This document shows, in pieces, positions 860 to 55,724 of a stretch of 64,000 bases of DNA. A program made the position numbers and the translations under genes. How positions within the stretch are numbered: the first letter of the stretch is position 1; every line of letters starts with the position of its first letter. The notes under the pieces are model-generated. The model had not been told where the DNA came from. It worked only from the letters and a program-made list of their open reading frames with translations, and made no database searches. The DNA is taken from IMG/VR virus record IMGVR_UViG_3300030107_006644, positions 1-64,000 of that record; one strand, written 5' to 3'.

Positions 860-868
860 GGATTATAA

Positions 869-5919: not shown

Positions 5920-5925
5920 GCAGAA

Positions 5926-8507: not shown

Positions 8508-8513
8508 GTAATT

Positions 8514-24240: not shown

Positions 24241-24259
24241 AATTAAGAGGGGTATATAA

Positions 24260-26068
24260 ATGGCTAGCAAAATAATACCGATTAAGTATACGAGCAGAGA
24301 TTTTAATTCGATTAAAGCCGATTTGGTTGAATATGCAAGGCGGTACTATCCTGACACATTCAAGGATTTTAACGAAGCCAGCTTCGGCGCACTAATGCTT
24401 GATACTGTTGCCTACGTGGGCGATGTGTTGTCGTTCTATATGGACTACCAGATTAATGAGTCTTTTATTGACACTGCGGTAGAGTATAGCAATGTGTTGC
24501 GACTGGCAAGACAACAGGGTTACAAGATTCCGGGTGCAGCATCAAGCTTTGGAGAAGTCTCCTTATATATTCTGATTCCAGCAAACAGCACAGGGCTAGG
24601 CCCCGATCCAGACTTTATACCAACATTGATGGAGGGTTCTACATTTTCTGCTCAAGGTGGAACCACCTTTTCGTTACTGGAAGACATAGATTTTTCAAAT
24701 CCAGATAATGAGGTTGTGGCCGCTAAAATAAATGAAGCGACCGGCGTGCCAACACATTATGCGATTAAAGCATACGGCAAGGTGGTGTCAGGCAGGGTTA
24801 CCTATAAGGATTACACTGTGGGCACCTTTAAGAGATTTAGAAAAATAAGAATTGGCCCGCGAAGTGTGGGAGAGGTTTTATCTGTAACGGATTCAGAAGG
24901 AAATCGCTATTATGAGGTTGGCCACTTATCACAAAACATGGTTTATGCACCGGTCGCAAACGTGTCAGACGACAGAACTACTGTGCCGAATATCATAAAG
25001 CCGCTAATAGTGCCTAGGAGGTATGTTGTTGAACGCAATGGTTCTGACTGCTTCATCCAGTTTGGACACGGCTCAGAGTCTGAATTAAATAGTCCAAGTA
25101 TTGAGGATCCGCGCTCCGTAGCAATACAAGTGCATGCTAAAAAATACACTACAGATAGAGAGTTTGACCCGAATAAATTGTTGTTTACCGATACGATGGG
25201 TATTGGTCCACAAAATACAACGATAAGAGTGACGTATAGAACCAACGGCACAGGCCGCACAGGCGCCGCAGTTAACGGGATCACCCGAGTTCAGACTCCG
25301 ATTTTTAACTTCAAGACAACCAAATCAAGCGTACTGGCTGATGCTCGATTGGGCTCTGTTAAGAAGTCGCTGGAGCTAACCAACGAAAGTGTTATTCCTT
25401 CGGCCAGTGGCAGAATCTCGACAACAGAGCTTAAGAAGAGAGTTGCAGGACATTACGCTGCGCAAAATAGAGCAGTGACAAAAGAGGATTATCTAACTTT
25501 GGTGTATACAATGCCGGCCAAATTCGGCTCAGTAAAGCGGGCGAATATATTGCGAGATCCCGACTCTTTTAAGAGAAATTTGAATCTATACATTATATCA
25601 GAAACTAATAGGGGGCACCTAACCCAATCCACCACAACGTTAAAGCAGAATATAAAAACTTGGCTAAACCAACATAGAATGCTTAGCGATACTATCGACA
25701 TTTTAGATGCGAAAATAATAAACTTTGGTATTGAATTTGAAGTCAAGGCAATGCCAAATGTAGATAAGACGGCGGTATATACTTCTTGCCGGAATATGCT
25801 GCGTGATGAACTATCAGGCCCTACTCGTATCAAGGATATTGGAGAGCCACTTTCTTTGTCGCGACTTTACACAAGGCTAAATAACATCAGAGGAGTTATG
25901 GACGTAAAAACGATTAAAGTATTGCAGAGAAGCGGTACACCATATTCTCAAGTTGTGTACGACATTAAGAGCAACATGACGGCTGACGGACAATACCTAA
26001 AGGTTCCCGACAACTGCGTAATAGAATTAAAATACCCATCTAGAGATATACAAGGAACGGTTAGATAA
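24260..26068 (+). CDS. Baseplate wedge protein, T4 gp6 / baseplate J-like
   Basis: YTSRDFNSIK..L, DFNEASFG, ESFIDTA, LARQQGYK, IQFG.G, AQNRAVTKEDY motifs; follows gp25-like gene. Confidence 0.88.
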   Translation: MASKIIPIKYTSRDFNSIKADLVEYARRYYPDTFKDFNEASFGALMLDTVAYVGDVLSFYMDYQINESFIDTAVEYSNVLRLARQQGYKIPGAASSFGEVSLYILIPANSTGLGPDPDFIPTLMEGSTFSAQGGTTFSLLEDIDFSNPDNEVVAAKINEATGVPTHYAIKAYGKVVSGRVTYKDYTVGTFKRFRKIRIGPRSVGEVLSVTDSEGNRYYEVGHLSQNMVYAPVANVSDDRTTVPNIIKPLIVPRRYVVERNGSDCFIQFGHGSESELNSPSIEDPRSVAIQVHAKKYTTDREFDPNKLLFTDTMGIGPQNTTIRVTYRTNGTGRTGAAVNGITRVQTPIFNFKTTKSSVLADARLGSVKKSLELTNESVIPSASGRISTTELKKRVAGHYAAQNRAVTKEDYLTLVYTMPAKFGSVKRANILRDPDSFKRNLNLYIISETNRGHLTQSTTTLKQNIKTWLNQHRMLSDTIDILDAKIINFGIEFEVKAMPNVDKTAVYTSCRNMLRDELSGPTRIKDIGEPLSLSRLYTRLNNIRGVMDVKTIKVLQRSGTPYSQVVYDIKSNMTADGQYLKVPDNCVIELKYPSRDIQGTVR

Positions 26069-27543
26069 TGGCTATTAAGAGATACCAAGCTGATGCTGAT
26101 ACAACCATAACGAACGCCTATCAGGATAATATGGAAACTCGCGGCACGGGCTCCAACATGGGAGGCGCAGACGTTTTAGAGACGTTTGTGATTTATGCTC
26201 AACAGAGCAGAACAAGTGTTGAATTGCAAAGAATTCTTGTGAAATTTCCTGTAGCCACGATGAGCAGCGACCGATCCTCGGGAGCGATCCCGGCTTCTGG
26301 CAGTGTTAACTTCTATTTAAAAATGTACAACGCACCACACGCCAGAACACTACCAAGCCAATATGAATTGTGGGTTTCCTCGATTTCTACAGAATGGGAC
26401 GAGGGTGTTGGCTTAGATCTAGAGACATATGAAGATCGCGGGTATGCAAACTGGATAGTTGCGAGATCGGGCTCCTCGGGAACAGGTAGCTGGACTGCAG
26501 CCGGCGGAGATTATCATAATGATGCGAAGTCTTCTTTTACTGCATCTTTTGATCTTGGAAACGAGGATATAGAATTAGACATTACCACTCTTGTTGAGCA
26601 GTGGATTAATAGTGATGGAAATGTTTTAGGCTCTAAATCGAACTACGGAGTTGGAATCAAGTTTTCGCCCACATCCGAACAAGCCGTGTCTTCTTCTTAT
26701 ACAAAAAGGTTTTTTTCAAGAAGTTCGGAATTTTTCTACAAGCGCCCGGTTATCGAAGCGCGCTGGGATTCGGCAATAAAAGATGATCGAGGCGGTTTTT
26801 ACATTAGCAGTTCCCTCGCCGGCGAAGAAAATATTAATGATATCTTCTTACACAACTACATTAGAGGCAAGCTTAGGTCGATTCCCTCATCCGAGTCTTT
26901 AATAGTTAGAATCTATTCTGGTTCCTCCGGCCCATCTGGTTTGCCGCTAGATATTAAAAATGTTAACAACAACGCAGCGACCGCTGTCTCAGCGAACGAA
27001 ATAAGTACCGGAGTGTACAAAGCGCGCCTACAGGTTACTAGTTCAATTAGTTCAACCGAATCACTATATGATGTGTGGGTTCTAGGCTCAGAAGAGGTGC
27101 ATACAGGATCCGCTATCACTCCTAAAAAATTCGATAAGGGATTTGCTTATACGGCAGCACCGTCTCCACAATATGTTGTGGCGCCAATGAATTTAAAAAG
27201 TGTTTACAGTAACGAGGAAGTTGCTAGATTTAGATTTTTTGTGCGAGAGAAGAATTGGAGCCCAACTATTTACAGCAAGGCTACGGCAACTCAGCCGTCC
27301 GCTGTTTTGGATAGTGGCTCTTTTAAGATTTTTAGGATAAGAGATGGAACAGAAGCAATTCCTTACGGTACCGGCAGTACAATGCATACTCAAATGTCGC
27401 ACGATGTTTCAGGAAGCTATTTTGATTTAGACATGGCTATGATGGAGCCGGGCTATTCGTATGGAATCCAAATTGCTTACTACAATGATATGCAGTCTAG
27501 CTGGACCGAGATACCAGACATTTATAAATTTAGAGTAGAATAA
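26068..27543 (+). CDS. Virion structural protein (DNRLRE/CBM96-like beta-sandwich N-terminus)
   Basis: ADADTTI, RILVKF, WDEG.G, W...GGD, DITTLVEQW, NYGVGIK pattern; TAATG coupling with gp6-like gene. Confidence 0.55.
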   Translation: MAIKRYQADADTTITNAYQDNMETRGTGSNMGGADVLETFVIYAQQSRTSVELQRILVKFPVATMSSDRSSGAIPASGSVNFYLKMYNAPHARTLPSQYELWVSSISTEWDEGVGLDLETYEDRGYANWIVARSGSSGTGSWTAAGGDYHNDAKSSFTASFDLGNEDIELDITTLVEQWINSDGNVLGSKSNYGVGIKFSPTSEQAVSSSYTKRFFSRSSEFFYKRPVIEARWDSAIKDDRGGFYISSSLAGEENINDIFLHNYIRGKLRSIPSSESLIVRIYSGSSGPSGLPLDIKNVNNNAATAVSANEISTGVYKARLQVTSSISSTESLYDVWVLGSEEVHTGSAITPKKFDKGFAYTAAPSPQYVVAPMNLKSVYSNEEVARFRFFVREKNWSPTIYSKATATQPSAVLDSGSFKIFRIRDGTEAIPYGTGSTMHTQMSHDVSGSYFDLDMAMMEPGYSYGIQIAYYNDMQSSWTEIPDIYKFRVE

Positions 27544-27551
27544 TAAACGTT

Positions 27552-30500
27552 ATGAGCGTAAAGAAACTTTTTGATAAAGCGAAAAAAACAAGACCGGTTG
27601 TTAAGAAACCGAACAAGCGTCTGCACGTTGATGTAGAGTCGGAAGACTTTATGGAGGCTAAGGCCGCAACGCAGGAAAGATACGACCCGCATGTAATCTA
27701 TGGCACCACGCCAATAGAAATGAAGAACTTTGTAAGATACGGCTCTGCAAAGCGGTATTTTGAAGACGCGTTCTCAAGAATCTATACAACTTATCCGTAT
27801 GACGGTTCGCTAAAAGAAAAAGAGGAATGGTCACAAACCTCAACGCCTCTTGACCGCTATATCTTCGACAATGTATATCCTAGAACAAATGGCTATATAC
27901 GAATTTCTTCTGCTGGTTGGGGCGCCCTAGGCGCTAATGGAATCACTGTTGGGTACGGACACCCAAGCACTTTAGAGTATGTTACGTTTTATGGAGGTCC
28001 TACAACGGGGTCCGCCACTAACCTGATGAAACATTTCGATCTTCAAGATCGCGGTGTTGGATCCAACATTTATGAAAGCTATAGTGAACTTTCTTCGTCG
28101 ACCGGCGGAGAGGTCGGATTAGGGACAAGAGAATCCAACCTTAAGTTTGACGTGGAAGATTTTGGTGTTACTGTAGAATTTTGGCTTAAAAAGACGGCAT
28201 TCACTACGGCTAAAACAGAGAAAGAAGTTATTTTCGACCTTTGGAACGGAGAGACCCCGGCTACTGATGGCTACGGGCGCTTAAGAATTGAGATAGATGG
28301 TACGGCAACAGGATCTCCATTTTTGGTCTCCTGCCAATCAGGATCGTCAGCCGGCTTCTCCAATGAGGTTGTCGGAACGGGCCTTACCACAACAACTCTG
28401 CAAGATTGGTCTCACTATGCGGTATCGTTAAAGGCGGACACTTCCACTAATAAAATTCGTACACGTCTGTATGTCAACGGCGTTTTGAATCAGGAACAGT
28501 CTTTAGGCACAGCGATGGGCGAAGTTACTGGCTCGCTGATTGCTAATATTGGTGCTCTCCGAGGTGCCACAACGTCTGCTACTGTTGGCACGGTAGCTGA
28601 AGGGTACGGAAAGCTTTCGGGCTCTTTGGATGAGTTTAGATATTGGAAGGCCGAGCGTGGCATTAAGGAAGTTGGTCGCCACTGGTTCAAGCAGTATGCC
28701 GGAGGCACCAACACTGATTTGTCCAACACTACGCTTGGTGTATATTATAAGTTTAACGAAGGCTGCACCGGAACGGCCTCCGTAGATCAGACAGTACTCG
28801 ATTATTCAGGCCGCCTAACAAACGGACACTGGGTTGGGTATCCGGGTTGCACAGCGCGCTGTGTTGATTCCGCTATGGTCCTCGCTGGAGCCGCAGAGCG
28901 GGAATTTAAAGATCCGATTCTGTATTCTTTTCATTCTGACGTTGCGACAAAAAAAGAGACCATTTCAAAAAATGCAAAAGCGTATGATGATAACAACAGC
29001 AGTTCGATTTATTCAACGATACCGAACTGGATTTTGGAGTTTCAAGAGAACAACACAGCCAACGATCTAGAATATCTCACTCAGATAATGGCTTCCGAGT
29101 TTGACAAGCTACATCAGCAAATTTCGGCCCTCAGCCGAGTGCGAGATAGCAGCTATCTATCTTCGACGCAAACATCGATACCGTTTACAGATAAGATGCT
29201 TACAGAGCGCGGCATGCCCGCTGCAGATATTTTTGAAAATGCAGATCTGCTAGCAAAAATTATGGGTAGATCCGAAAGTCAAGAATATGAATCAGATATT
29301 GTTGATATTAAAAATAGAATCTATCACAGCATTTATAATAATCTCAGCAACATTTTTAAATCCAAAGGCACAGAAAAGGCGTTTAGAAACCTTATACGAT
29401 GCTTTGGTGTGGACGAAAAACTATTAAAGTTAAATATCTATGGCGATAATGCGACATATAAACTAACAGATAACGCTAAAATAGTTGCCAAGAAAAGAAG
29501 GTATGCAAACTTCTACTCAAGCGGATCTGATGATGCAACAGTGGTGCAGCAGACAGCTAGCTCTAATGCCAATTCGGTTTCCTACATAACGGGTTCTAAC
29601 AACAGCTTGTACGAGCCTTATTCCGGTATGACTGTTGAAGCAGAGGTCCACTTTCCCAAGAAAAAATCAGCTTCCGATGAGGGATATTTCGCAGTCACAT
29701 ATCATACCGCATCCCTTTTCGGAATGCACACGGTTGGCGACGATCCGGCAGACTTTACATTTTTAACAGATGATTATGCAAACCTCCAAGTTTATGCGCT
29801 AAGGGATGCATCAGACAACAAGTCAGCTAGATTTATGTTAACGTCTTCATCTCCTTTCCCAATTCCAGAGATAATAACTGATTTATATAAAGATGTGTAT
29901 GAAGACCAGACATGGAACCTGTCTGTACGACTACGCCCCTCGAAGTATCCGATTTCTGACATGGTTCACGGAGCAGAAGCTGTGGCGGCTACAGCGACTA
30001 TCACCACAGTTGCCGAAGCATCAATTAATGATACTAAAGATTTTACACTAACAGACGCTGCCGGCACAACAACGACATACAACTTCTCTACAGGGCTGGC
30101 AACCACCGATAATAACGTTGCTTATACTCCGGGCGGTCAAGACGGCCGTGGACCAGCGGGCACCATTACAATTGGTGTACTCGGAACTACAACGGCCGCC
30201 GATATCCGAGATGAAATTATCACAAGGATTAATGCGGGAACCTCTATAGGTTTTGCCGCATCGGCGTCTGGTGACAATGTTCTTGTTACGCAAAATACTG
30301 CTGGCACTGCCGGAAATACATCAATTACGGAGCCAGCAGGTGCTACCGGCTTAACTCTACCGTCAACTTTTACTGGTGGGTTGGGTGCAGCCCACCCCTT
30401 TAAAGTAGAATTCCATGGCCTGCGCTTAATTGCGGGAGAAGTGATCGACGAGTTTTTGTTGACATCTTCTGCAACGCACGCGAGCGGGTCCCTATTCCTC

Positions 30501-33500
30501 CAGTCGTCAAAAAGACTTTATATGGGCGCGCATTTAACAAATTACACTGGCTCGGTAATCCAACGTTCAGATACCAGATCTTCGGGTCTGCGCTATTGGC
30601 CAATCTATTTGGGCCCCGGAGAAGATCCGTCCGTACTTTCAAGAACCAAGGATGAGTTTAAAAACAGAGTTAAAGATATCGATAATTACGGCACGTCCTA
30701 TGTTTACAGGAACGCAGGATTTTTACAAGATTCTCTGAAAGATATAGAAGTTCCGTTTGTTGAAACTCTAGCTTTAAATTGGAACTTTAGTGAGCTATCG
30801 TCCTCCAACGCCGCCGGCGAATTCACAGTCGAAGACGAATCTTCGGGTTCTTCCGATCTGTTGAATCGTTACAAATGGGTGTCGAACTTGGTAGAAAGGC
30901 AGCATACCGGTCGAGGATACAAGTTTGCTGCGTCATCTACAGACGTAATAGACATCATGTACGTCAACTCATATGCGCCGCAGCTACCCGAGACAATTTC
31001 AAGCTCGGATATGGTTAATATTTTAACGCAAGATGACGACATTTTTACGAGAGAGCATCGTCCTGTAAACTATTATTTTGCTATTGAAAAGAGCATGTAC
31101 CAAACAATATCTGAAGAGATATTAAACATGTTTGCATCAATTGTTGACTTCAATAATTTAATTGGCGATCCCGTCAATCGATATAGGCAGGAATACAAAG
31201 ATTTAGGAAAGTTGAGACAGCTGTTCTTCGAAAGAATCGGCAACACACCTGAACTAGACAAATATGTTGAATTTTACAAATGGATTGATAGCGGCATTAA
31301 TGAAATGCTAGAAGCTTTAATTCCAGCTTCGGTAAACTCCAGTGATGGTGCCAGAACAATGGTTGAAAGTCACGTTTTAGAGAGAAATAAGTATTGGAAC
31401 AAGTTCCCGACAATAGAGATGGTCGGGGATCCGCCTGCAGTTGGACTTCGCGGAATAACGGAAATGCTTTATCCGTGGAAATTTGGCCACGCTAATCCGG
31501 GAGATGTTGATTCAACCGTTGCAACCATAGAAAATGAACGTTGCTTCTGGTGGCGCGAAAGAGCAGAACGCACAACGCCGGCAAACACCAGCGGAGATTC
31601 TACAATAGACACGCAGAGAGAAGGTATAAGAGATGTTGTTGGTAAACATCGGGATGAAAGCAGGACCCTATCGCACAACGCCGGCACAACATACGCCGGA
31701 CAAACATATGCACTTAATCGGTTTAGTCGACCTTACAGGTTTGATGTAGACGAGGTTAAGGAGATTCACGGAGGCGTAAATTATCGCAAGGGTAAGGATT
31801 TAGATTTCTCAAGAACAGCAACGCATCACCACGGTGAGGATAATCCCGTAGGCTTTCCTGTTAATGTAATACTTTATGAAGATTCGAACGCTAGCGTTTT
31901 AGAAAAACAGTCAAAAGATCCGTGGTTTGATATGGCCGGCAACACAGAAGGCCGTCAGGCGACCTGCACCGATCAGGAAGATGAGTGGCCAAGATCGAAG
32001 AACAAGGTTAGCTATCATGCGTTTATTTTGAAGAATCAAGAATATTCGCCACCTCCATGGCCGCCATCGATGCCAAAAGAAGATGATGGTAATACGTATT
32101 TTTCATCGCTCAAGGGTGATTGGGCCTCACCGTTCAGCCTATACGAGACTACAGAAGAAGTTGCAGCTACAGGATATCACAAGGATATCAACGACAGATT
32201 CAGGGCAAAGACAACCATTACAAACCTGCATGAAGATTCTTACGGAGATAACGAGAGACCGGTTCAGGGTCCGTTTACCGATGCTCATGTTGGTGGTCGC
32301 CAAAATCGACACATAATTTTGAACAAGGGTGAAGACACCTACGTGGATCGGCCAGAAGCGTGGAAGTTATTAATGGGCCCCGATCTTGCTTCCTGCGGAC
32401 ACCCCTTTATATCGCCCACAGACGCCTACAAGCTTGGATTGGTCGGTCCGGACTATCCGCACCCGCTTCCGTACTCCCCGGGCGTGAAGCCCTCTACATG
32501 GCGCCCTAGAGCCAACTATTTAAGAGACGGTACAGCTAAGCGCCCCGTTAACATCCAGAACATCAAGCATGATACTGGTTCGTCAATTTTAGGCAACTAT
32601 GATAAAGACTACCAAGTGGTTAGTATCCCCGGTAGACAAATAAACAATCGTGCTTTAATCAAGTCAGGAGGATTCGAACCGATAATCGAGGATTCGTTCT
32701 ATTTTGCAGAAACTTTAAGCGAATACAGAAAGCCAGAAAGATTGAGATCCGAACATGTCTTTGTAACAAGATTCAGCGCCCCGGGAGCCCCCGAGGCCGC
32801 CGGCGACCATCGTGGCGGTTTCGGATTAGATTATAATTCTGGTGAATTCTCCTCCTATAGTTCTATGAACTATCGAAATCTTATTCTCCGTGGAGGAGGC
32901 CGATGGCCCGATGGCATCCGCGAGCTATTAACAAATCACACTAGACAGTTTGGATACTTTAGCGATCAGATGAACTTATCAAACGGCGCCGCAGCAGCAG
33001 CTGTGGCAGCTACAGCGACTATCACTACAGTTGTCGAAGCGTCAATTAATGATACTAAAGATTTTACGCTAACAGACGCTGCCGGCACAACAACGACTTA
33101 CAACTTCTCTACAGGGCTGGCAACCACCGATAATAACGTTGCTTATATCCCCGGAGGTTCAGATGGTCGCGGTCCATCAGGTACTATTACGATTGGCCTG
33201 CTCGGAACTACAACGGCCGCAGATGTCCGGGATGAAATTATCACAAGGATTAACGCCGGCACTTCTATAGGTTTTACTGCGTCTGCGTCTGGAGACAATG
33301 TTCTTGTCACGCAAAATACTGTCGGCCCTGCCGGAAATACATCAATTACAGAACCAGCAGGCGCCACCGGCTTAACTCTGCCGTCAGCTTTTACTGGCGG
33401 ATGGGGGATGTCTAGAGCATCAAGCGTTAATGCTTTTGATTATAGCGGCCAACCGAATTACCACAAGACTAATAGAAATACTGGCTATAGATTGAACAAC

Positions 33501-39830: not shown

Positions 39831-39832
39831 CG

Positions 39833-43800: not shown

Positions 43801-44649
43801 GAGCAACTTTTTACAGAAAGCGTTCTTGAAAACATTATGATGGCAACAAACGAGGTAATGCTGACAGTGCTAGAGCCAGTAAAAAATAGCATTGAAGATC
43901 CTTTTTCGTCGTATAATAATCCGTTTCGTTCTGCAGCTAGTTCGATGATTGACCACGCCGAAAACTTTAATCTTGAATCGCCGTTTAACTTTTTGACAGC
44001 TAAGGGGGTTTCCAACGCAGAGTTTAAAACGCTTCCTAACCAAATTAAAGCTTTGTTTACAAACGGATCCGTAAAAACGAATCTTTTGGCTCCAACCACG
44101 TCTACACTCAGCAAGCAGTCTAGACGATCATCGATGAGGTTCGGATATGACTTTATTAAAGCTGTAGAAGTTTTTGCTGGATATAAGGCATCCAAGACTG
44201 ATGCTAATCTAATCAAGGAAGCGATTTGGGAACCCCTGTCTTATGATATCTACAACAAAAGTTCCGGAAAGATTCTGTTGTGCCGTTTGCGAAGTTACGA
44301 AAATACTAAGGTTAACATTAGATACAAGCACGCATCTGCTCTTCCAACTTACGATGAGCACTTCTTTTTGAGACCGGGCGCCCCAGTCAATGTTAAGTTT
44401 ACTGTAGCAAACTCTGAAAGGTTGGTGAGTTATAGCAATAAGATATCAAAAAATGAGAAGACAGTTAGAGAAACCGTGCTTCAAAGTCTTGAATTAGCAC
44501 AAACTAAAGACACGAATATCTTGGGTTCCAATATGCCGATTACCCAGCCATCACAACGAGTGCGTTCGGGTAATTTTAAATCCAAACAAAAAGCTACTGG
44601 CGCCGCTGAATCGCGTTCTGCCGCCGCACCAACCATGGGAGATTACTGA
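40855..44649 (+). CDS. Large hypothetical virion protein with His-x-His repeat insert
   Basis: Long ORF (track start 40846; GTG 40855 preferred, TAGTG overlap and GAGGAG RBS); HEH..HYH..HTH segment. Confidence 0.55.
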   Translation: MANYNEEQKTSVVESKRKRKPNANRQLRDIEGMVDYNVDIASLFAMDSLPNVAISKITLSEGLSEDALREMYDKDPHIEEASAKAPIKDRYGKEKFPTPRKEVDRKNVEQSVLSIDVKLTMKEIIDASGYGAWYDNPDFLKYLKIRVVMSTSRSLTDQIVRGGMFLDPLYISKSRYKKYAKQKELSVEGEISKDMSKYLYFKTQDGKHKIYDIPVHVNFLTQEAKPKHVSVFAVTYIDSDQLAADFGCAAGNFLATGAKTKYGMIVGENIIDKGRTNKVSIAFTTPEGKVWMGPTSYRQNSKTYATSRSRSAKKLKHQQLPNAKIVDLRDALTPEKAQAEFTIIENEVLNLNFAYLQPTVMDPTRIKEYFTDLFPTKDRYGNFRATFGFNYQKFLKENTEFGKFFDNKNLPILQNLFELCEITQIRILRERVKDLQTINSLNVGLEGRVLFSHQHPHFIKQVVSYSGDRKGGELSPARIIVDGTEKSVSAGEPQSEIVGELGVRGSIQQISVFPETSNKIRHFSFADKDISKATDGLYRYGVEIAISDGTRKYVDKIKQDLLVAKQQLEVYYNEATARKENQQNYNDFNRGYTKEFIRSKYEQYPLPIDGAIASNTFVTAMPWSENAAAPVALHEHKIIMDSQGNGRTSTKDGHYHVITGFEIGNAVVDGKPVPNSHTHLTKTVGTVYESPWVRPVLAYLDSLVTILAGTQKINVQKISKVLYYMLSPETGNPHNILRVIKLVDNLYTQLQKIGSPPKRLDTWGIRKVGIDSARNLRVHKFFDYIYDTNFEKLTGFDYLNNIDYIDAGLKMISGKDFINRAEAETGRFFSSTSAKDLNIKGKSRTYVTNDTLVNTELSFLSPASAAIAGSQISLLKDASSVENSDLLRQAESKVLEHNFAPAFKRSNEGSSRNISVSDTSNSLSKVFDNLNIKAETLLSRAGNNLLYSGVLKMDCLTPARKYLGDSSKAIKEGLLVESLVDDEQLFTESVLENIMMATNEVMLTVLEPVKNSIEDPFSSYNNPFRSAASSMIDHAENFNLESPFNFLTAKGVSNAEFKTLPNQIKALFTNGSVKTNLLAPTTSTLSKQSRRSSMRFGYDFIKAVEVFAGYKASKTDANLIKEAIWEPLSYDIYNKSSGKILLCRLRSYENTKVNIRYKHASALPTYDEHFFLRPGAPVNVKFTVANSERLVSYSNKISKNEKTVRETVLQSLELAQTKDTNILGSNMPITQPSQRVRSGNFKSKQKATGAAESRSAAAPTMGDY

Positions 44650-47261
44650 TGTCGATATCAAAAGCAAAGACAATTGTAAATATAGAAAACTTTGAACAAT
44701 CGGCAGATTCGGCAAGACAAGTGACGAACAAGTATTGGACTACCGACAAAAATAGAGCGTTTCCGTATTTTAAAAAAGATGATCTAGATTCCGATGAGTC
44801 GGTCGAGGTGCCTGTCGAGATACAGATTGTAAAAGAACCAAAGTGGAATGCTTCTCACCCATTTTATGAAATAGAGCAGGAAATTTCATTTCGAGCTTCT
44901 TCAGCCCTTCTTGTCGATAGTGAAGATCCGGCAACCGATTGGGTCACCTTTGTAACTCAGGAGTTGTTCCCAGACTATTCAGAAACTAGCGATATCGCCT
45001 CTAAAATATATCACGATTACGTTTTCGACGTAAAAGTTCCATATGGTGAGCGAGAGATGAAGGATTTAAGTCTTGTGCAAAACGCATATTTTGCCGATGT
45101 AAAATCGGTTTACAACTTTTATGTAGAAAAATATGAAAAAGCGATGATCGAAACAGATCTGGCAGAACAACTGATGCCGAATCTTTATTCAATCAAATTA
45201 GACGCTCAAGTAAAACGAAAGAACGTAAAAGATCACAAAACCAAAGCTGTCGAGACCGATATGTCTACGCTAAACACGCTCATGGGCGAAATGCCGGAAA
45301 ACTATATAAACATCTTTCAACAAAAGAGAGACAGAACTCCGGACACCTATTTCGAACAAAAGGCCAATAATCAGAAGTACTTTGAAAATATTTTAAAATT
45401 TGCCAAAGCGGCCAAAGAAAATGATCCCGAAGGTGTAAAAAATGTGATAAGCAAGTTCTCAAAAATGGGACTAACGGCCGGGATGGTCGATCAGTTAGCT
45501 GAGTTTAACGAGCGTTCGAGCCTATACATGCTTCCAATGTATGCGTCGATTGACTTTAAAACAGATGGTTCTACGGTATTCGCCGAGGTTTTCAGAGAAA
45601 GCGACTTACAGACTTCTCTAATGAAGTATATGATGCGTTCTGACTCCGCAGGTGCAATGAAGCCTATGCAGGTTCATGAATCAGAGGAAAAGATAGTACA
45701 GCACTTAAAAACTTCGAATAAGAAATATGAAACCAAGCCTCGCCGTGCCCTTCTTCACAAAGAGCGTTCCCGACCATCAATAGATGTTTTAAGCTGGTGG
45801 GTCAGTCATCAGCAAGGCACAACATCGGCCGACTCTTTGCCGCTTAAAGAGGGGGTAATTTTGGATGAAGCAGAGCATGTTTCGACGTCCAATAATCCTT
45901 ATCGAACCAATTTGGAGAAACAAATCTCTAATATGGTTTTCCATAACAAATTTAGAAAACTTATAACCGGATACTCTAGAGATTATGAAGACCTGCTCAA
46001 CGGAGCCCGGGCATATTCTGAGACTCTTATGTATAAGATACAAAAGTTTGTTGGCAATCCTAGGGGCGCCCCAATCCAGACTTACTATTTGTGCAACTCG
46101 GAAAACACAGACATAGTAAACTTTATTGACACACAGGTCAAGTACGACAACGTGTATACTTATGTAATTAGCGCATATCAGATTGTGCTGGGCACTCAAT
46201 ACTATTATAAGAATGTAAAGTACGGTGTAACTTTGTCAAATACAGGTAGAGAAGTAGAAGAAGAGCTGTCCGACGTGGACAAATACGACTACTATGCGTC
46301 TGCAGTAGCTGTTGTGAGGCCTTCCGTTAAAATCGTAGAAGTGCCAATTTTCGCAGAAACGCAGAGAATTGTAGATACACCACCAGTCGCGCCGAATATT
46401 GATATCGTACCATACCGCGCGGTTAACGATAGGCTCTTGTTTAATCTCAACGCTGGGTTCGATGATTATAATATAATGCCACCAATCCTTAACAAACAAG
46501 ATCAAAGGATGTATGATAAGATCAGGATGAATCAAAAGCTTCATCATGATGAACCTATACGGTTTAAAAGTGATGATCCTTCATCTGCGTTCGAAGTATT
46601 CAGAATCACCAGAAAGCCAAAGTCTTATCTAGACTTTCGTGGAGCACTTCGCGCAACCGTACATACAGATGTTTCTGCCGAGACGATACAAAAGGCCTCA
46701 GCAGCATCATATATTGAGAGGCTGAAGCCTAACGTCAAGTATTATTATATGTTCCGCGCTATCGACATTCATGGCTATCTATCTAATCCTACGCCAGTAT
46801 ACGAGGTAGAATTGGTCGATAATGCCGGGAATACCTTTCCGATAGTCAAAGCAATCGAATTTGAGCCTATGATACCATACACGAATAACAAGAAAATGAA
46901 AAAATACCTACACATCATGCCGACAATATTGCAATCAGCACTGAATGAAGAGAGGACTGGCTTAATAGATGATGCGGGTGAAAGGGCGGAGACAGCACAC
47001 GTTGCAGGGAACAACATATTTATTGGAAAAGCAGAGGAAGACGTGTGGAACAAGAGATTTAAAATTCGACTTACATCTAGACAGACAGGAAGAAAAATTG
47101 ACCTTAATGTAGGCTTCAGCTATAAGCATGTTGCTGACGAAGAGCAGTACAAAAATGAGGTAGAGATAGCTCAATATTTGCAAGAGAGGCAAAAAAACTC
47201 TCAACTAGTCATAGATATATCGGAGCTAACATCAGATACTCTTGAGTTATATGATAGATAG
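44649..47261 (+). CDS. Hypothetical virion protein (870 aa) with FN3/Ig-like C-terminal region
   Basis: FIDTQVKYDNVYTYVI and LKPNVKYYYMFRAID..G..SNP resemble FN3-type strands; TGATG coupling. Confidence 0.5.
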   Translation: MSISKAKTIVNIENFEQSADSARQVTNKYWTTDKNRAFPYFKKDDLDSDESVEVPVEIQIVKEPKWNASHPFYEIEQEISFRASSALLVDSEDPATDWVTFVTQELFPDYSETSDIASKIYHDYVFDVKVPYGEREMKDLSLVQNAYFADVKSVYNFYVEKYEKAMIETDLAEQLMPNLYSIKLDAQVKRKNVKDHKTKAVETDMSTLNTLMGEMPENYINIFQQKRDRTPDTYFEQKANNQKYFENILKFAKAAKENDPEGVKNVISKFSKMGLTAGMVDQLAEFNERSSLYMLPMYASIDFKTDGSTVFAEVFRESDLQTSLMKYMMRSDSAGAMKPMQVHESEEKIVQHLKTSNKKYETKPRRALLHKERSRPSIDVLSWWVSHQQGTTSADSLPLKEGVILDEAEHVSTSNNPYRTNLEKQISNMVFHNKFRKLITGYSRDYEDLLNGARAYSETLMYKIQKFVGNPRGAPIQTYYLCNSENTDIVNFIDTQVKYDNVYTYVISAYQIVLGTQYYYKNVKYGVTLSNTGREVEEELSDVDKYDYYASAVAVVRPSVKIVEVPIFAETQRIVDTPPVAPNIDIVPYRAVNDRLLFNLNAGFDDYNIMPPILNKQDQRMYDKIRMNQKLHHDEPIRFKSDDPSSAFEVFRITRKPKSYLDFRGALRATVHTDVSAETIQKASAASYIERLKPNVKYYYMFRAIDIHGYLSNPTPVYEVELVDNAGNTFPIVKAIEFEPMIPYTNNKKMKKYLHIMPTILQSALNEERTGLIDDAGERAETAHVAGNNIFIGKAEEDVWNKRFKIRLTSRQTGRKIDLNVGFSYKHVADEEQYKNEVEIAQYLQERQKNSQLVIDISELTSDTLELYDR

Positions 47262-47294
47262 GATAAAAAAATAAGACATTTGTAGAGAGAAATA

Positions 47295-47302
47295 CTAATT
47301 AT
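47295..47302 (+). promoter_or_regulatory. Candidate late-promoter motif CTAATTAT
   Basis: Intergenic, 20 nt before the ATG of a virion gene; matches the recurrent CTA(T/C/A)TTA motif. Confidence 0.35.
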
Positions 47303-47322
47303 TTAGCAGGGAGAAACAATAG

Positions 47323-48255
47323 ATGGCATTTTTAGACAATTCAGGCGATATCATTTTGGACGCAGTTCTAACCGACACGGGAAGGATGAGATTGGCCCGT
47401 GGAGATGGTTCGTTTAAAATAGTGAAGTTCGCATTGGGAGATGACGAAATTAACTATGAAAATTACAACTCCACACACGAAAACGGTTCAGCATATTACG
47501 ATTTAGAGATTATGCAGACGCCGATTTTAGAAGCATTTACCAACAATGCATCGTCTATGAAATCTAAACTCATGTCGATTTCCAGAAACGATCTGCTTTA
47601 TATGCCGATTCTAAAGCTCAACTCGCTTGCTGCTGCAACCGCGCAAACCACTTCTGGTGGCTTTTATGTGGCTGTCGACACAGATACGGAGAATGTTTTA
47701 GTTGGCGGATCCTCACGAATTGATGGAATTCTTTCTGGCGTATCCAGAGGCGGAAACTTCGTTCACGTTGATCAGGGAATCGACGGTCAGGATGACAGCG
47801 GAAATCCAGTAATCTCACCCGCACAAGCACTAGATGCTGACTTGGTAGAGACGCAATATGCTATTGAAATTGACAACAGGCTTGGTTCTATTAAGTCTGT
47901 AAATGATAATCTAGCATCAGTTTCGTTCATTGATGATGATAACATTGCTAGCTACTACCTTGCACTGGGTTCAGATACCGAATATGTAGTCGAAAACAAG
48001 AACAGAGAGGTTTCAAACAAAGAGGTAATTGTTGGTCCGCGTGGAACAACGCTCAAGCTAGCCATTCAGGCTTCGTTAGAGTTGAACACTAGTACATACT
48101 TGTTTTCGAGATTAGGCAGCACCTTCACGATGACGGGAAATGACGGCACTACCAGTTATACTTTTTATTACATTGATTCAACTGTTCGTGTGGTGGGAGC
48201 AACAACGGGACACTCAATTGACATTCCCGTTAGATTCGTTAAGAAATATTCATAA
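47323..48255 (+). CDS. Virion structural protein (baseplate/tail-collar-like N-terminus)
   Basis: MAFLDNSGDIILDAVLTDTGR..LA.G..F.IVKFALGDDEINY resembles the LT..G...LA...FA.GD start of tail-collar/fibre attachment domains; GGGAG RBS. Confidence 0.6.
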   Translation: MAFLDNSGDIILDAVLTDTGRMRLARGDGSFKIVKFALGDDEINYENYNSTHENGSAYYDLEIMQTPILEAFTNNASSMKSKLMSISRNDLLYMPILKLNSLAAATAQTTSGGFYVAVDTDTENVLVGGSSRIDGILSGVSRGGNFVHVDQGIDGQDDSGNPVISPAQALDADLVETQYAIEIDNRLGSIKSVNDNLASVSFIDDDNIASYYLALGSDTEYVVENKNREVSNKEVIVGPRGTTLKLAIQASLELNTSTYLFSRLGSTFTMTGNDGTTSYTFYYIDSTVRVVGATTGHSIDIPVRFVKKYS

Positions 48256-48277
48256 GAGCTAAAATAGGAATTTTAAA

Positions 48278-49396
48278 ATGGCAACAGTATATAAATCACT
48301 TTTAAACAGCGACATAGTGTCAACAAGGACGTTATTGCACGAAGCAATTCCGATTACGGGCTCGATAGTATCTGGCACGTATATCGAGGGAGCCGCAGCT
48401 AGTCAGGTTGAGGTCAACGTCAAAAATTACGCACACGGCATGTTTCAGTCCGTGTATGACTATCCATATCTTAGCTCGTCCGCAAACCACATATTAGATA
48501 TTACAGCAGGGTATGCGGCCTCGTCGGGCCTGTCTTCTTCGACAAATATCCAAAATAGCAAAAAGATTAACGTTTATAGTCAGATGGCTCAAGTTCTAAT
48601 GGGTTATGACTATACCGGTTCAATTCAGCCGTTCGATGAAGATATGGACTTGGTTGCCGGCGGAACAAAGCTGAATGAGTGTTACTTCCTCAACTTCTCC
48701 AGACTATTGGTCAAAGATGAAATCAAGAAAGGGTCTTTCAAGCTGGATCTGGGGGTCACAAACGCCTACAATGCCCCATTCTCTAATGTATTGACCGTTC
48801 ATGATATATCGGCGTCCAATTCCTTTAGAACGTCTCACAACGGCGAAGTGGGAATCTTAGAGGCTATAGATAAAATTGGAACATGTCTGCAAACTCAGAA
48901 TGTAAAATGCGGACTTATCTTTTATCAGGCCGGAGTTGTGGTACTTAGCTCGTCTATCTTTCAGAGTACAACCCATGGAGGTCTTCTCGCCACTGGCGCC
49001 GGCAATACCGCTCAGTTGCGATATTGGTATGATGGATCGTCGTGGCAGCATCAGCTTCCCAAAGCCGCATTTACAGGCTCTTCAGTTTCCGGATCTGCAG
49101 ACGGAGTTCGAAACCGTATTTACAACATTCACTTTAATAACACTACTGAACTTAATTCTACAGTGTATTTCTGCCGAGTCAACCACAATGACTACAACTA
49201 TAGTTCAAATCCGACCTATCTCAAGAATAGCAAGATCCGCGTTAAGAACACTCGTTCAGATAGTCCAACCTCTTACATTACCACTGTGGGTCTATATTCG
49301 GCAGACAACGAACTGTTGGCTGTGGCCAAGCTGTCAGAGCCGCTGAAGAAGGATCCAACAACCGAGCTAACGCTACGTGTTCGTTTGGATTATTAA
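48278..49396 (+). CDS. Virion structural protein, paralogue of 49454
   Basis: IKKGSF, G.IFY..G, NYSSNPT, C-terminal YITTVGLY..DNELLAVAKLSEPLKK..T.RVRLDY. Confidence 0.65.
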   Translation: MATVYKSLLNSDIVSTRTLLHEAIPITGSIVSGTYIEGAAASQVEVNVKNYAHGMFQSVYDYPYLSSSANHILDITAGYAASSGLSSSTNIQNSKKINVYSQMAQVLMGYDYTGSIQPFDEDMDLVAGGTKLNECYFLNFSRLLVKDEIKKGSFKLDLGVTNAYNAPFSNVLTVHDISASNSFRTSHNGEVGILEAIDKIGTCLQTQNVKCGLIFYQAGVVVLSSSIFQSTTHGGLLATGAGNTAQLRYWYDGSSWQHQLPKAAFTGSSVSGSADGVRNRIYNIHFNNTTELNSTVYFCRVNHNDYNYSSNPTYLKNSKIRVKNTRSDSPTSYITTVGLYSADNELLAVAKLSEPLKKDPTTELTLRVRLDY

Positions 49397-49453
49397 AGTA
49401 GGCTTTATTACGACAGCATTTACAAAATCATAATAGAAAGCTAATTAAAGCAA

Positions 49454-50662
49454 ATGTCGTTTTACAAGTTCAAACAAAAAGATATATTAAGAAGTACGAT
49501 CAAGGCTCACCCACTATGTGAGTTTACGATCTATAGTGGAAGCATATATCACAATCGTCGGCACCAAATTTCCGGTGCCTTTGTGCCGTCAGTTCCAAAC
49601 TGCTTGCCGGGCGAGCTTAGTTTGTACGAATTAAACGTTGATAGAACAGCGGCTGAAACGGGAATGATATACCCGTTCATTACCAAAGACGGGTCGCTAA
49701 GCTCGTTTAAGACAGTTTCAGCAACAAGTTTTCATACTACGTTTGGCTATGGAGACGAAATAACTGGCAGCTATCCGATGACAGCCAGTATTTCAAGAGA
49801 ATACTTTGATGTTGATAACGTCTCGACAGCCAGAAAGCACATTCAGGCTTTAAAGAGTACGTTTGAACATTATAGACTTTTAAGCCCGCATTTTGAATAC
49901 TCTTCTAGCTTGGGCGATAAAGACACTCAAGAACTGGCGCTTATCAGTATTCCATCTATTTTTTATGGCTCTAGGATAAAGAAGGGAACAGTTAACTTAA
50001 GGTATTATATAACCGGCACTTTAGTGGCTCAGGCAAACGATGAGAAGCAAAACGGCGAACTAATTCAAGTTGGACCAGTAGGCTCAAATGGTTCTGGATC
50101 GGTCGCTGGACAAGTCTTATATAACGAGGGTTTTTTACTTATGACAGGCTCTTGGCAAGTTGAGAAAGACGCATCGATAACTAGAGACTATATTGATAAC
50201 CCTGCAGATTTGAAAAAGTCTGCTTGGGTATATTTTGGAACAGCAGCAGGAAACGACGGCTTCAGCGGCACGGGCACAAATAGCCCACTGGTTTCGGCTA
50301 GCTATTCTATAGAATTCGAGGGCACCTCTTATATTCCAACTTTGATGATGTTAGCTCATGCAGAAGAGGGAGAACTTAACTACTCCAATAACCCAACATT
50401 TGTAACTTATGGACAACTTGGATCGAAATCGGCCGCAACAGGCTCACACAGATATGTTCAGAATTCAAGTATAAAGCTGGTTAACACCCTTTCCTCTTCA
50501 TATAAGGGTTACGAAGAGGAGGAGTATGAAAGGCAGACATTTATTACAAAAATCGGCATTTATGACGAGGACAAGAATTTAATTGCCGTGGCCAATTTGG
50601 CGACTCCGGTAAAGAAACCGGAAGGACAAGGATACACATTTAAGCTAAAGCTTGATTTTTAA
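49454..50662 (+). CDS. Virion structural protein, paralogue of 48278
   Basis: IKKGTV, G.VLYNEG, NYSNNPT, C-terminal FITKIGIYDEDKNLIAVANLATPVKK..TFKLKLDF. Confidence 0.65.
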   Translation: MSFYKFKQKDILRSTIKAHPLCEFTIYSGSIYHNRRHQISGAFVPSVPNCLPGELSLYELNVDRTAAETGMIYPFITKDGSLSSFKTVSATSFHTTFGYGDEITGSYPMTASISREYFDVDNVSTARKHIQALKSTFEHYRLLSPHFEYSSSLGDKDTQELALISIPSIFYGSRIKKGTVNLRYYITGTLVAQANDEKQNGELIQVGPVGSNGSGSVAGQVLYNEGFLLMTGSWQVEKDASITRDYIDNPADLKKSAWVYFGTAAGNDGFSGTGTNSPLVSASYSIEFEGTSYIPTLMMLAHAEEGELNYSNNPTFVTYGQLGSKSAATGSHRYVQNSSIKLVNTLSSSYKGYEEEEYERQTFITKIGIYDEDKNLIAVANLATPVKKPEGQGYTFKLKLDF

Positions 50663-52142: not shown

Positions 52143-52162
52143 TCGGCTACTGGAGGCTTGTT

Positions 52163-54220: not shown

Positions 54221-54221
54221 T

Positions 54222-55265: not shown

Positions 55266-55266
55266 A

Positions 55267-55623: not shown

Positions 55624-55724
55624 AGAAAGTATTACACAAATTAGCAAACCTATTTAATAGTGACCATTGTTGTTGCTGCTGCGGTTGTTGTAGTTGCGAC
55701 AACTGTTCGGGAGCATGTAAATGA
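55620..55724 (+). CDS. 34-aa Cys-rich micropeptide (metallothionein-like), not in ORF track
   Basis: MKKVLHKLANLFNSDHCCCCCGCCSCDNCSGACK*; ATGA overlaps at both ends fill the gap exactly; purine-rich RBS upstream. Confidence 0.75.
   Translation: MKKVLHKLANLFNSDHCCCCCGCCSCDNCSGACK

Follow-up and report, generated by a model that had tools for sequence, protein, structure and literature searches.

A serine-containing motif over-represented on phage tail and baseplate proteins as a possible sugar-attachment code

A five-residue motif (i.e., hydrophobic, Ser/Thr, small residue, Ser, hydrophobic) is strongly and specifically over-represented on the outward-facing tail and baseplate proteins (for the tail sheath, by analogy with T4 gp18) of an abundant aquatic phage group that also carries its own pair of glycosyltransferases (GTs). 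The motif may therefore be a phage sugar-attachment code, although no glycan has yet been shown. We analyzed a 64,000-nucleotide stretch of DNA (hereafter, the window; positions 1 to 64,000 of IMG/VR record IMGVR_UViG_3300030107_006644) and refer to its proteins by the start coordinates of their genes. A sequence-only reading had proposed that [S/T]-[G/A/S]-S tripeptides recur in a subset of the baseplate proteins, and this observation held and proved stronger than stated. Its interpretation (i.e., an O-glycosylation signal repeated in unrelated folds and written by the nearby GT cluster) was partly supported.

On the basis of 1,000 composition-preserving shuffles, [ST][GAS]S was about 3 to 4 times more frequent than expected in exactly four window proteins: the 26068 protein (13 observed versus 4.0 expected; z = 4.6), the 27552 protein (40 versus 15.3; z = 6.8), the 48278 protein (8 versus 2.1; z = 4.1), and the 49454 protein (9 versus 2.2; z = 4.7), all with P < 0.001. 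The by-eye counts of the sequence-only reading had been 13, 30, 9, and 12, respectively, of which the 9 and 12 are closer to the counts that also allow T at the last position (10 and 13). No other open reading frame in the window was significant after correction for multiple testing. The enrichment survived shuffling within blocks of 10, 20, or 40 residues and thus depends on residue order. An unbiased scan of all 8,000 tripeptides in the four proteins ranked SGS (20 versus 4.1) and TGS (18 versus 3.3) first, each at P of about 1.7e-8, while the next best tripeptide was at about 4e-4. Codons at the 70 sites are diverse, indicating that the signal acts at the protein level and is not a DNA motif. 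The −1 and +1 flanks are hydrophobic in 57 to 59% of the sites, against a background of 31 to 33%.

The 491-aa 26068 protein (26068 to 27543, + strand) is encoded directly downstream of the gp6-like wedge gene, and 9 of its 13 sites are [ST]GS. Its AF2 model (pLDDT, 69) resembles tandem Ig-like/macroglobulin-like beta-sandwiches; the motif is 6.8-fold enriched over 62 orthologues, with conserved sites at aa 27, 77, 247, 284, 346, 416, and 435. The 27552 protein (27552 to 39830, + strand; 4,092 aa) is a giant distal-baseplate or fibre-like protein whose 40 sites are concentrated in aa 150 to 1150 and aa 2900 to 3450 (4.3-fold enrichment over 53 orthologues), and it shows weak orthology to the 167764 protein of Microcystis phage Mel-JY01 and the 108129 protein of LR756508. 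Its Laminin_G_3 (ConA-like) domain (aa 205 to 369; 28164 to 28658, + strand; Pfam PF13385, E = 1e-10) carries four of the sites (aa 253, 263, 326, and 356). The 48278 protein (48278 to 49396, + strand; 372 aa) has five paralogues in Mel-JY01, two in Flavobacterium phage immuto, and one each in Rhodothermus phage RM378 and LR756508. The 49454 protein (49454 to 50662, + strand; 402 aa) belongs to a family with more than 4,900 metagenomic homologues; all of the 120 listed homologues are enriched (mean of 10.6 versus 2.2 expected), the sites at aa 104, 110, 214, and 231 are 92 to 98% conserved, and fold matches in BFVD include ConA-like/LamG proteins. The 48278 and 49454 proteins are paralogues (BLASTP, 2e-14), so the four proteins represent three families rather than four unrelated folds. 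Moreover, all modelled or annotated parts are beta-sandwich-type (i.e., Ig-like or LamG/ConA-like), and the premise of unrelated folds is thus only partly right.

In contrast, the motif is absent or depleted in the neighbouring proteins. The gp25-like and gp6-like inner baseplate wedge proteins (23521 to 26068, + strand; identified by PHROG hits) have one site each in the window, and their families are also motif-poor (gp6, 7 versus 28.8 expected across 62 orthologues; gp25, 0 versus 3.7). The three neighbouring proteins encoded at 40846 to 48255 (+ strand; the 40846, 44649, and 47323 proteins of 1,267, 870, and 310 aa, respectively) have no sites (versus 3.6, 1.3, and 1.5 expected) despite containing 7 to 10% Ser. 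Together with the gp6-like protein, they have 1 site versus 8.1 expected, which is a depletion.

The motif follows a strict grammar, phi-[S/T]-[G>A,S]-S(not T)-phi, where phi is a hydrophobic residue. [ST]GS is 4.3- to 7.4-fold enriched, while the permutations GS[ST], G[ST]S, S[ST]G, and [ST]SG are at 0.3- to 2.4-fold, [ST]GT is at about 1- to 2-fold, AGS, NGS, DGS, and GGS are at about 1-fold, and [ST]NS, [ST]DS, and [ST]PS are depleted. At conserved sites, S and T interchange freely at position 1 and G, A, and S interchange at position 2. The turn-formers N and D are excluded at position 2, so the requirement is smallness and not a Gly backbone conformation, whereas position 3 is about 90% Ser and almost never Thr. 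Information is confined to five residues across 307 sites in four phages, and therefore there is no hidden shared domain (hhalign probability, 1%). The motif occurs in several non-homologous virion proteins of the same phages but not in others of equal Ser/Thr/Gly content, which points to a trans-acting reader or writer.

The motif is conserved in hundreds of metagenomic orthologues and also occurs in the distant cultured relatives Mel-JY01 and immuto and, more weakly, in RM378. T4, P-SSM2, Ma-LMM01, and the S-SSM4 sheath show no enrichment, although the same scan recovers the known HxH sites in T4. In 79 tail-sheath orthologues, the variable middle domain, which is outer by analogy with T4 gp18, contains 634 sites versus 246 expected for the full motif and 392 versus 81 for [ST]GS (i.e., a 4.8-fold enrichment), while the motif is depleted in the N-terminal arm (0 versus 13.3) and the conserved core (18 versus 46).

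The window also encodes a sugar cluster. A PD-(D/E)XK nuclease (86 to 859, + strand; Pfam) is the conserved left neighbour of the GT pair in all relatives, and its orthologues precede the GTs in immuto, Mel-JY01, and LR756508. GT-A (869 to 2146, + strand; Pfam Glycos_transf_1) is a clade-specific GT4 glycosyltransferase with an intact, conserved EX7E motif and is a candidate writer; among 50,697 phage records, its orthologues occur only in immuto, Mel-JY01, LR756508, and RM378, and there are 284 relatives in IMG/VR. GT-B (2095 to 4101, + strand; Pfam), a candidate co-writer that also keeps the EX7E motif, consists of a second GT4-like domain (a paralogue of GT-A, 21% identical) fused to a C-terminal GT2 domain; among cultured phages, its orthologues occur only in immuto and Mel-JY01, the copy in RM378 is degenerate, and LR756508 has none. 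The nuclease-GT-A-GT-B module is shared by all motif-bearing phages and was found only in this clade. The variable part of the cluster (4098 to 11464, + strand) holds a GT77-like Nucleotid_trans, a GT47/exostosin-like protein, a nucleotidyltransferase-phosphatase-kinase fusion, an epimerase/reductase, and a GDP-mannose 4,6-dehydratase. Its content differs between relatives (e.g., immuto has aminotransferases and Mel-JY01 has methyltransferases). According to published LC-MS nucleoside analysis, immuto DNA consists of dA, dC, dT, and formyl-preQ1 and is not glycosylated (bioRxiv 10.1101/2023.04.13.536721); therefore, its syntenic GT cluster is not a DNA glycosylation system.

Three outcomes had been named beforehand as counting against the glycosylation reading, namely, no excess over shuffled sequences, buried sites, and equal enrichment in relatives lacking GTs, and none of them refuted it: the excess is strong, the sheath sites lie mainly in the domain that is outer by analogy, and no relative was found that has the motif but lacks the GTs. 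LR756508, which is nested inside the clade by gp6 identity and lacks GT-B, has largely lost the motif (0 sites in the N-terminal and middle part of the sheath and 5 versus 1.6 expected in the baseplate orthologues), with individual sites replaced within conserved flanks. However, the link from GT to motif is correlative and rests on very few independent lineages (i.e., one clade plus one loss event). Additionally, RM378 has a degenerate GT-B yet retains a cluster of enriched proteins, so GT-B is not strictly required for the signal.

The most serious rival, which we consider only slightly less likely than glycosylation, is that the motif is a structural or physicochemical surface element independent of any posttranslational modification. 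In this view, it would be an amphipathic strand-end unit in which the −1, small middle, and +1 residues pack inward and the two hydroxyls face outward, inherited and re-used in the beta-sandwich and fibre modules of this clade (e.g., for subunit packing, hydration, or binding of host polysaccharide), while the GT cluster would serve something else, such as remodelling the host envelope; phage GT4/GT2 clusters may act on host envelope polysaccharides, and the motif and the GTs could simply both be clade markers. Most of the excess lies at position-conserved or semi-conserved sites inside conserved blocks, lineage-specific sites being only 1.5 to 2 times more frequent than control motifs. The hydrophobic flanks and the location of the sites at beta-strand termini or hairpins in both AF2 models fit a structural beta-strand cap, and all motif-bearing domains are beta-rich. 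Fibre-like proteins of immuto and Mel-JY01 carry the unit in tandem at a period of 4 to 6 residues, followed by GDGSxLTG, which looks like a structural repeat. Known bacterial and phage O-glycosylation sites are, moreover, usually in disordered Ser/Thr/Pro/Ala-rich segments. On the other hand, the same folds in outgroup phages, including sheath outer domains, giant gp7-like proteins, and fibres, lack the motif; LR756508 orthologues keep the proteins and flanking residues but drop it; and individual sites are exchanged among immuto, Mel-JY01, and the window phage, so single sites are not structurally essential. The acceptance of A and S but not N or D at position 2 and the rejection of Thr at position 3 are unusual for a beta-strand or turn propensity, and other Ser/Thr/Gly-rich fibre proteins in the same virion are not enriched.

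Recognition by something other than the phage GTs, such as another modifying enzyme (a kinase, an acyl- or phosphotransferase, or a host enzyme), an assembly chaperone, or a partner protein docking on the outer tail surface, appears unlikely. The short grammar, the occurrence in non-homologous proteins, and the surface location fit any reader of a five-residue signal, and the sugar cluster contains a kinase-like domain. However, this domain is fused to sugar-nucleotide enzymes and varies between relatives, no candidate enzyme other than the GT pair showed the same clade-restricted distribution in what was examined, and the hosts span three phyla (i.e., cyanobacteria, Flavobacterium, and Rhodothermus), which argues against a host enzyme. 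Although the four proteins are Ser-rich (9 to 14%), an artefact of composition, local low complexity, or a DNA-level signal is refuted by the shuffles, the permuted motifs of identical composition, the codon diversity, and the lack of enrichment in equally Ser/Thr/Gly-rich proteins of the window, relatives, and control phages.

Several characterized systems offer comparisons. Mycobacteriophages O-glycosylate virion proteins with phage-encoded GTs (Freeman et al. 2023, as cited in PMC12619734), which resembles the cytoplasmic decoration and surface glycan coat proposed here. However, the glycans in that system sit on the C-termini of the capsid and tail-tube subunits, whereas the candidate sites here are a defined motif dispersed over the distal baseplate, fibre-like proteins, and sheath outer domains, and the major capsid, tube, and portal proteins of relatives are not enriched. 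Chloroviruses glycosylate their major capsid protein, a folded beta-sandwich protein, independently of the host, with virus-encoded cytoplasmic GTs and short non-canonical sequons. The GT B736L of chlorovirus NY-2A (PDB 3oy2) is the closest solved structure to GT-A, but this similarity is generic to the GT4 family (E = 5e-7 over the C-terminal half), and the best-known chlorovirus glycans are N-linked on the capsid, while the candidate here is an O-link on Ser of bacteriophage tail proteins. The soluble cytoplasmic GT4 enzymes of Gram-positive adhesins (GtfA/GtfB on serine-rich repeat proteins and SdgA/SdgB on Ser-Asp repeats), sometimes paired paralogues of GT4 fold, also modify Ser in very short repeated motifs (S-x-S type). 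GT-A is not a member of these families, as the NCBIfam GtfA and SdgA models score about 15 bits against cut-offs of 575 and 800; their substrates are long tandem low-complexity repeats rather than dispersed strand-end sites of folded domains, and GtfB is non-catalytic, whereas both phage GTs keep catalytic EX7E motifs. The autotransporter heptosyltransferases (AAH/TibC) are Ser-specific and modify many sites per protein in a strand-short loop-strand context of beta-helical passenger domains, and the window encodes a possible NDP-heptose-like pathway (a tentative assignment); however, they form a different enzyme family, and no BAHT-like protein was seen in the window. Finally, the His-x-His repeats of T4 tail fibres, for which HSH was the top hit of our tripeptide scan, are a precedent for a purely structural explanation of a tripeptide over-represented specifically in tail-fibre proteins. 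These repeats coordinate ions inside trimeric fibres, whereas the present motif lies on exposed variable domains of several non-fibre proteins and is largely lost in a nested lineage.

Taken together, our analyses establish the motif, its grammar and conservation, its restriction to particular virion proteins and domains, and its co-distribution with the GT pair, while the modification of the serine, the role of the GT pair as the writer, and a purpose in shielding or host interaction are inferred. No glycan has been observed on any of these proteins, and we regard glycosylation as the most likely reading but a tentative one (probability, about 0.4). On this reading, the motif is a short linear signal that this phage clade has placed repeatedly on the solvent-exposed surface of its tail (i.e., the distal baseplate proteins, the fibre-like proteins, and the outer domains of the sheath) as an acceptor site for O-glycosylation of the invariant serine by the clade-specific cytoplasmic GT4 pair. 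The variable neighbouring genes would supply and elaborate the sugar, so that the tail surface would carry a phage-made glycan coat.

The window is positions 1 to 64000 of the 205.5-kb IMG/VR contig IMGVR_UViG_3300030107_006644. All genes of the window are on the + strand, and no phage in INPHARED matches the window at the nucleotide level. A PD-(D/E)XK nuclease gene followed by a sugar cluster occupies the left end (86 to 11464). The cluster encodes a GT4, a GT4+GT2 fusion, a GT77-like protein, a GT47-like protein, a nucleotidyltransferase-phosphatase-kinase fusion, an epimerase, and a GDP-mannose 4,6-dehydratase. Further to the right are a gp55-like late sigma factor (12214), a 2,792-aa ORF (15087 to 23465), and gp25-like and gp6-like wedge proteins (23521 and 24260), followed by the proteins designated here by their start positions (26068, 27552, 40846, 44649, 47323, 48278, and 49454) and by a RuvC-like resolvase, a primase, and a tubulin-like protein (50652, 51210, and 54153). 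The 2,792-aa ORF has no PHROG match, is not enriched in the motif (9 sites versus 5.7 expected), and may be a giant tail-internal or tape-measure-like protein. The tubulin-like protein (54153 to 55265) carries a tubulin/FtsZ-family GTPase domain just under the Pfam gathering score (E value, 1.8e-7), i.e., a PhuZ/TubZ-like protein in a phage of about 205 kb. The G+C content rises to 0.52 to 0.53 at 52000 to 58000, compared with 0.40 to 0.45 elsewhere, and this rise spans two Ala/Gly-rich ORFs of 685 aa (52163) and 504 aa (55721) without Pfam hits. A 124-aa ORF at 57873 to 58247 contains 25% glycine.

The enrichment of the [ST][GAS]S tripeptide proposed by the sequence-only reading was confirmed. 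On the basis of 1,000 shuffles, only four proteins were enriched: 26068 (13 sites versus 4.0 expected), 27552 (40 versus 15.3), 48278 (8 versus 2.1), and 49454 (9 versus 2.2). The gp6-like, 40846, 44649, and 47323 proteins together have 1 site versus 8.1 expected. Shuffling within 10-residue blocks did not remove the signal. An unbiased scan of all tripeptides in the four proteins ranked SGS and TGS first (P of about 1.7e-8 each), four orders of magnitude ahead of the next tripeptide, while the same scan on the other structural proteins found nothing comparable. The 70 sites use about 60 different codon triplets; a DNA-level motif is therefore rejected, and selection acts on the protein. A compositional or low-complexity artifact is likewise excluded by the whole-protein and block shuffles and by permuted-motif controls, although all of the expectations used here are composition based.

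The motif follows a strict grammar. In the window proteins and their families, [ST]GS was enriched 4.3- to 7.4-fold, while patterns of the same composition (i.e., GS[ST], G[ST]S, S[ST]G, and [ST]SG) reached only 0.3- to 2.4-fold. The ratios were about 1- to 2-fold for [ST]GT, about 1-fold for AGS, NGS, DGS, and GGS, and 2- to 4-fold for [ST]AS and [ST]SS, whereas [ST]NS, [ST]DS, and [ST]PS were depleted. At conserved alignment columns, S and T swap freely at position 1, and G, A, and S swap at position 2. Position 3 is Ser in about 90% of the sequences and rarely Thr, and the next residue is usually Y, F, W, V, I, or L. Over 307 sites from four phages, information content is confined to the tripeptide and the two flanking hydrophobic positions. 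The definition given by the sequence-only reading was thus accurate and can be sharpened to phi-[S/T]-[G>A,S]-S-phi. Spacing of the sites in the window proteins is irregular and no repeat unit extends beyond the five residues; the features of a structural fiber or beta-helix repeat, or of a long tandem Ser-rich repeat region, were therefore not found in these proteins. However, fiber- or spike-like proteins of two relatives, Flavobacterium phage immuto (37009 to 40819 of the immuto locus L150) and Microcystis phage Mel-JY01 (3065 to 4591 of the Mel-JY01 locus L145), carry short tandem runs of phi-[ST]GS-phi units with a period of 4 to 6 in their N termini, followed by a recurring GDGSxLTG element that no Pfam family matches. 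The motif does not conform to the general O-glycosylation sequon of Bacteroidota, D-[ST]-[AILVMT], since position -1 is hydrophobic and position +1 is G, A, or S; the hosts of motif-bearing relatives also include cyanobacteria and Rhodothermus.

The carriers share no detectable common domain. BLASTP revealed only the paralogy of 48278 and 49454, and an hhalign comparison of the 49454 and 26068 family profiles gave a probability of about 1%. Searches of both family profiles against the PDB returned nothing, and searches of the motif proteins against Pfam and PHROGs identified no family except for a LamG_3 domain in the giant 27552 protein. In AF2 models of moderate confidence (pLDDT, 69), the 26068 protein is predicted to contain tandem Ig-like beta-sandwiches (generic Ig-like tandem hits with low TM-scores), and 49454 is predicted to have a fold shared with ConA/LamG-like proteins of uncultured phages. 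A fold search of the 49454 model gave nothing significant against the PDB and only uncharacterized or LamG-like phage proteins against BFVD. In both models, the motifs sit at beta-strand termini or hairpins.

The enrichment is conserved among metagenomic homologs. The 49454 family has more than 4,900 such homologs; all 120 retrieved were enriched (mean of 10.6 versus 2.2 expected), and several sites were 92 to 98% conserved. All 37 orthologs of 26068 taken from IMG/VR were also enriched. Across all fetched loci, observed and expected [ST]GS counts were 383 versus 56.5 for the 26068 family, 570 versus 131 for the 27552 family, 7 versus 28.8 for the gp6-like family, and 0 versus 3.7 for the gp25-like family, although homologous sequences are not independent observations. 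The excess lies mainly at conserved and mid-occupancy sites, while lineage-specific sites are 1.5 to 2 times more frequent than those of control motifs. Host assignment from MAG bins was mixed, with three of eight assigned to Flavobacteriales.

Using tblastn with the gp6-like and 48278-family proteins, we identified Mel-JY01, immuto, and the 484-kb uncultured phage LR756508 as distant relatives (gp6 identity to the window protein, 29 to 31%) with the same baseplate synteny. The host of immuto is Flavobacterium sp. LMO8. In Mel-JY01 and immuto, the same orthologous families are enriched, as are further tail proteins, including fiber- or spike-like proteins, a 373-aa protein, and the tail sheath. 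The 373-aa protein, a hypothetical protein in the head/neck gene block of immuto (25075 to 26196 of the immuto locus L151), has the highest motif density seen (12 [ST]GS versus 1.3 expected) and could be a whisker or decoration protein. Capsid, portal, tube, hub, tape-measure, and replication proteins are not enriched, nor are several tail fiber proteins that are equally rich in Ser, Thr, and Gly. Rhodothermus phage RM378 shows enrichment in one gene cluster but not in its 48278-family ortholog or its sheath. No enrichment was found in the controls, i.e., T4 gp5-12, wac, and gp34-37; P-SSM2 gp6, gp7, gp8, and its giant proteins; Ma-LMM01, which infects the same host genus as Mel-JY01; and the S-SSM4 sheath. 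On T4 gp7-12 and gp34-37, the scan returned HSH as the top hit (4 versus 0.09 expected), which matches the known His-x-His metal sites of T4 fibers and validates the method. A tblastn search with a motif-rich fiber-like protein of immuto, performed to find carriers that lack the glycosyltransferases, recovered only immuto itself, and a comparison of sheath homologs revealed no cultured phage between the clade carrying the GT4 enzyme (GT-A) and the T4-like phages.

The tail sheath was used as a proxy for exposure. In the immuto and Mel-JY01 sheaths, every site lies in the N-terminal and middle part, upstream of the Pfam sheath core domains. Across 79 sheath orthologs of the clade, the conserved N-terminal arm has 0 sites versus 13.3 expected, the variable middle domain has 634 versus 246 for the full motif and 392 versus 81 for [ST]GS (4.8-fold), and the conserved C-terminal core has 18 versus 46 (0.39-fold for the full motif and 0.46-fold for [ST]GS). 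In T4 gp18, the corresponding insertion domains form the outer surface and the conserved domains form the inner layer. By this analogy, rather than from accessibility computed for the window proteins, we infer that the motif overlays the outward-facing part of the tail.

The trio of the PD-(D/E)XK nuclease, GT-A (869 to 2146), and the N-terminal half of the GT4+GT2 fusion GT-B (2095 to 4101) is orthologous and syntenic in the window phage, immuto, and Mel-JY01, while the rest of the sugar cluster differs among them. Among 50,697 phage records, GT-A occurs only in immuto, Mel-JY01, LR756508, and RM378, and GT-B occurs only in immuto and Mel-JY01, plus a degenerate copy lacking EX7E in RM378. 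GT-A has 284 relatives in IMG/VR, some on the same contigs as 26068 orthologs. In Mel-JY01, the GT-A ortholog is annotated as two adjacent CDSs (190 and 302 aa; 33441 to 34932 of the Mel-JY01 locus L146) that together align to the full-length GT-A of immuto and the window phage, i.e., either a split gene or a sequencing or annotation frameshift. GT-A and the N-terminal half of GT-B are paralogs (3e-8), and EG[FW]G...E is conserved in the GT-A and GT-B orthologs; paired paralogous GT4 proteins with EX7E are features of the GtfA/GtfB or SdgA/SdgB type of Ser O-glycosyltransferases. However, the NCBIfam models TIGR02918 and NF047880 for these enzymes scored only 15.4 and 15.9 bits (cutoffs, 574.6 and 800), and the closest solved structure, the chlorovirus GT B736L, shows similarity that is generic to GT4. 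A search for the T4-type late promoter TATAAATA as a sign of late expression of the GT genes gave matches not above chance. Published LC-MS of immuto DNA shows canonical dA, dC, and dT, with formyl-preQ1 replacing dG, which removes DNA glycosylation as the role of the syntenic cluster in that phage.

In the variable part of the cluster (5926 to 11464), a three-domain fusion (a sugar-1-phosphate nucleotidyltransferase, a HAD "capsule biosynthesis phosphatase," and an APH-like kinase) is followed by the epimerase/reductase and the GDP-mannose 4,6-dehydratase; together they look like a self-contained NDP-(deoxy)sugar pathway that is possibly heptose-like. Immuto has WecE-type aminotransferases instead. 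The listed ORF of the dehydratase (10238 to 11464) starts at a TTG that overlaps the previous gene (9505 to 10452) by 215 nt, and since its Pfam domain starts at residue 75, the true start is probably near 10460.

LR756508 provides a natural contrast. On the basis of gp6 identity, this phage groups with Mel-JY01 and immuto (38 to 44%), with the window phage outside that group (29 to 31%), and it is therefore nested within the motif-rich clade. It has the nuclease and GT-A, but no GT-B was detected anywhere in its genome at an E value of ≤1e-6 by tblastn, whose sensitivity limits such statements of absence. It has lost most of the motif: its sheath has no site in the N-terminal and middle part (10 and 11 in immuto and Mel-JY01), and its baseplate orthologs have 5 [ST]GS versus 1.6 expected. 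In the alignment of orthologs, positions that carry the motif in Mel-JY01 or immuto are replaced in LR756508, at least one of them within conserved flanks, and immuto itself lacks some of the Mel-JY01 sites. This is what relaxed selection after loss of a writer would look like, and it shows that single sites are not structurally essential. It is one event, however; RM378, which keeps enrichment in some proteins despite its degenerate GT-B, does not fit a simple GT-B rule, and the covariation rests on very few lineages.

The short, directional, Ser-specific grammar, the occurrence in nonhomologous proteins, the restriction to tail domains inferred to be exposed, the absence from the same folds in other phages, and the codistribution with a clade-specific GT4 pair whose cluster has no DNA glycosylation role in immuto favor a trans-acting reader or writer over a fold-intrinsic feature. 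We take O-glycosylation by GT-A and GT-B as the best single explanation (probability of about 0.4), and the proposal of the sequence-only reading that the motif is a glycosylation signal is in this sense partly supported. The motif, its grammar, its conservation, its distribution among virion proteins, and its co-occurrence with the GT pair are results of the analysis, while the solvent exposure of the sites, the attachment of glycans to the serines, and the activity of the GT pair as the writer are inferences; nothing biochemical is known for any of these proteins. A structural or surface motif that is independent of posttranslational modification remains a strong rival, only slightly less likely, and it is favored by the positional conservation, the hydrophobic flanks, and the tandem units followed by GDGSxLTG in fiber-like proteins. 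Another kind of reader or modification is possible but unlikely.

In its broadest form, which we consider more tentative still, this explanation would mean that an abundant clade of aquatic myoviruses (the window phage with thousands of metagenomic relatives, Mel-JY01, immuto, and RM378) encodes its own serine-specific O-glycosylation code. A conserved pair of cytoplasmic GT4 enzymes would write it onto the whole outer surface of the tail (i.e., the sheath outer domains, the distal baseplate, and the fibers), and the variable sugar-nucleotide genes next to the pair would diversify the glycan between lineages. Virion glycosylation by phage-encoded enzymes would not in itself be new, but this would be the first defined sequon for bacteriophage protein glycosylation and a glycan coat on a contractile tail. 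A literature search found no paper on this motif, on Mel-JY01, or on glycosylation of these phages.

If the motif is not modified, it is still an unexplained, strongly selected, and clade-specific signature, located on what is inferred to be the tail surface, that would mark which domains face outward and would be useful for annotating the many hypothetical baseplate proteins of uncultured phages. If the serines are glycosylated, this would give phage biology its first sequence-readable glycosylation code, and glycosylated virion surfaces could then be predicted from metagenomes. It would also explain why a widespread aquatic phage group keeps a conserved GT pair next to fast-changing sugar genes, and it would point to a glycan coat on the tail as a factor in host recognition, defense evasion, or particle stability in water.
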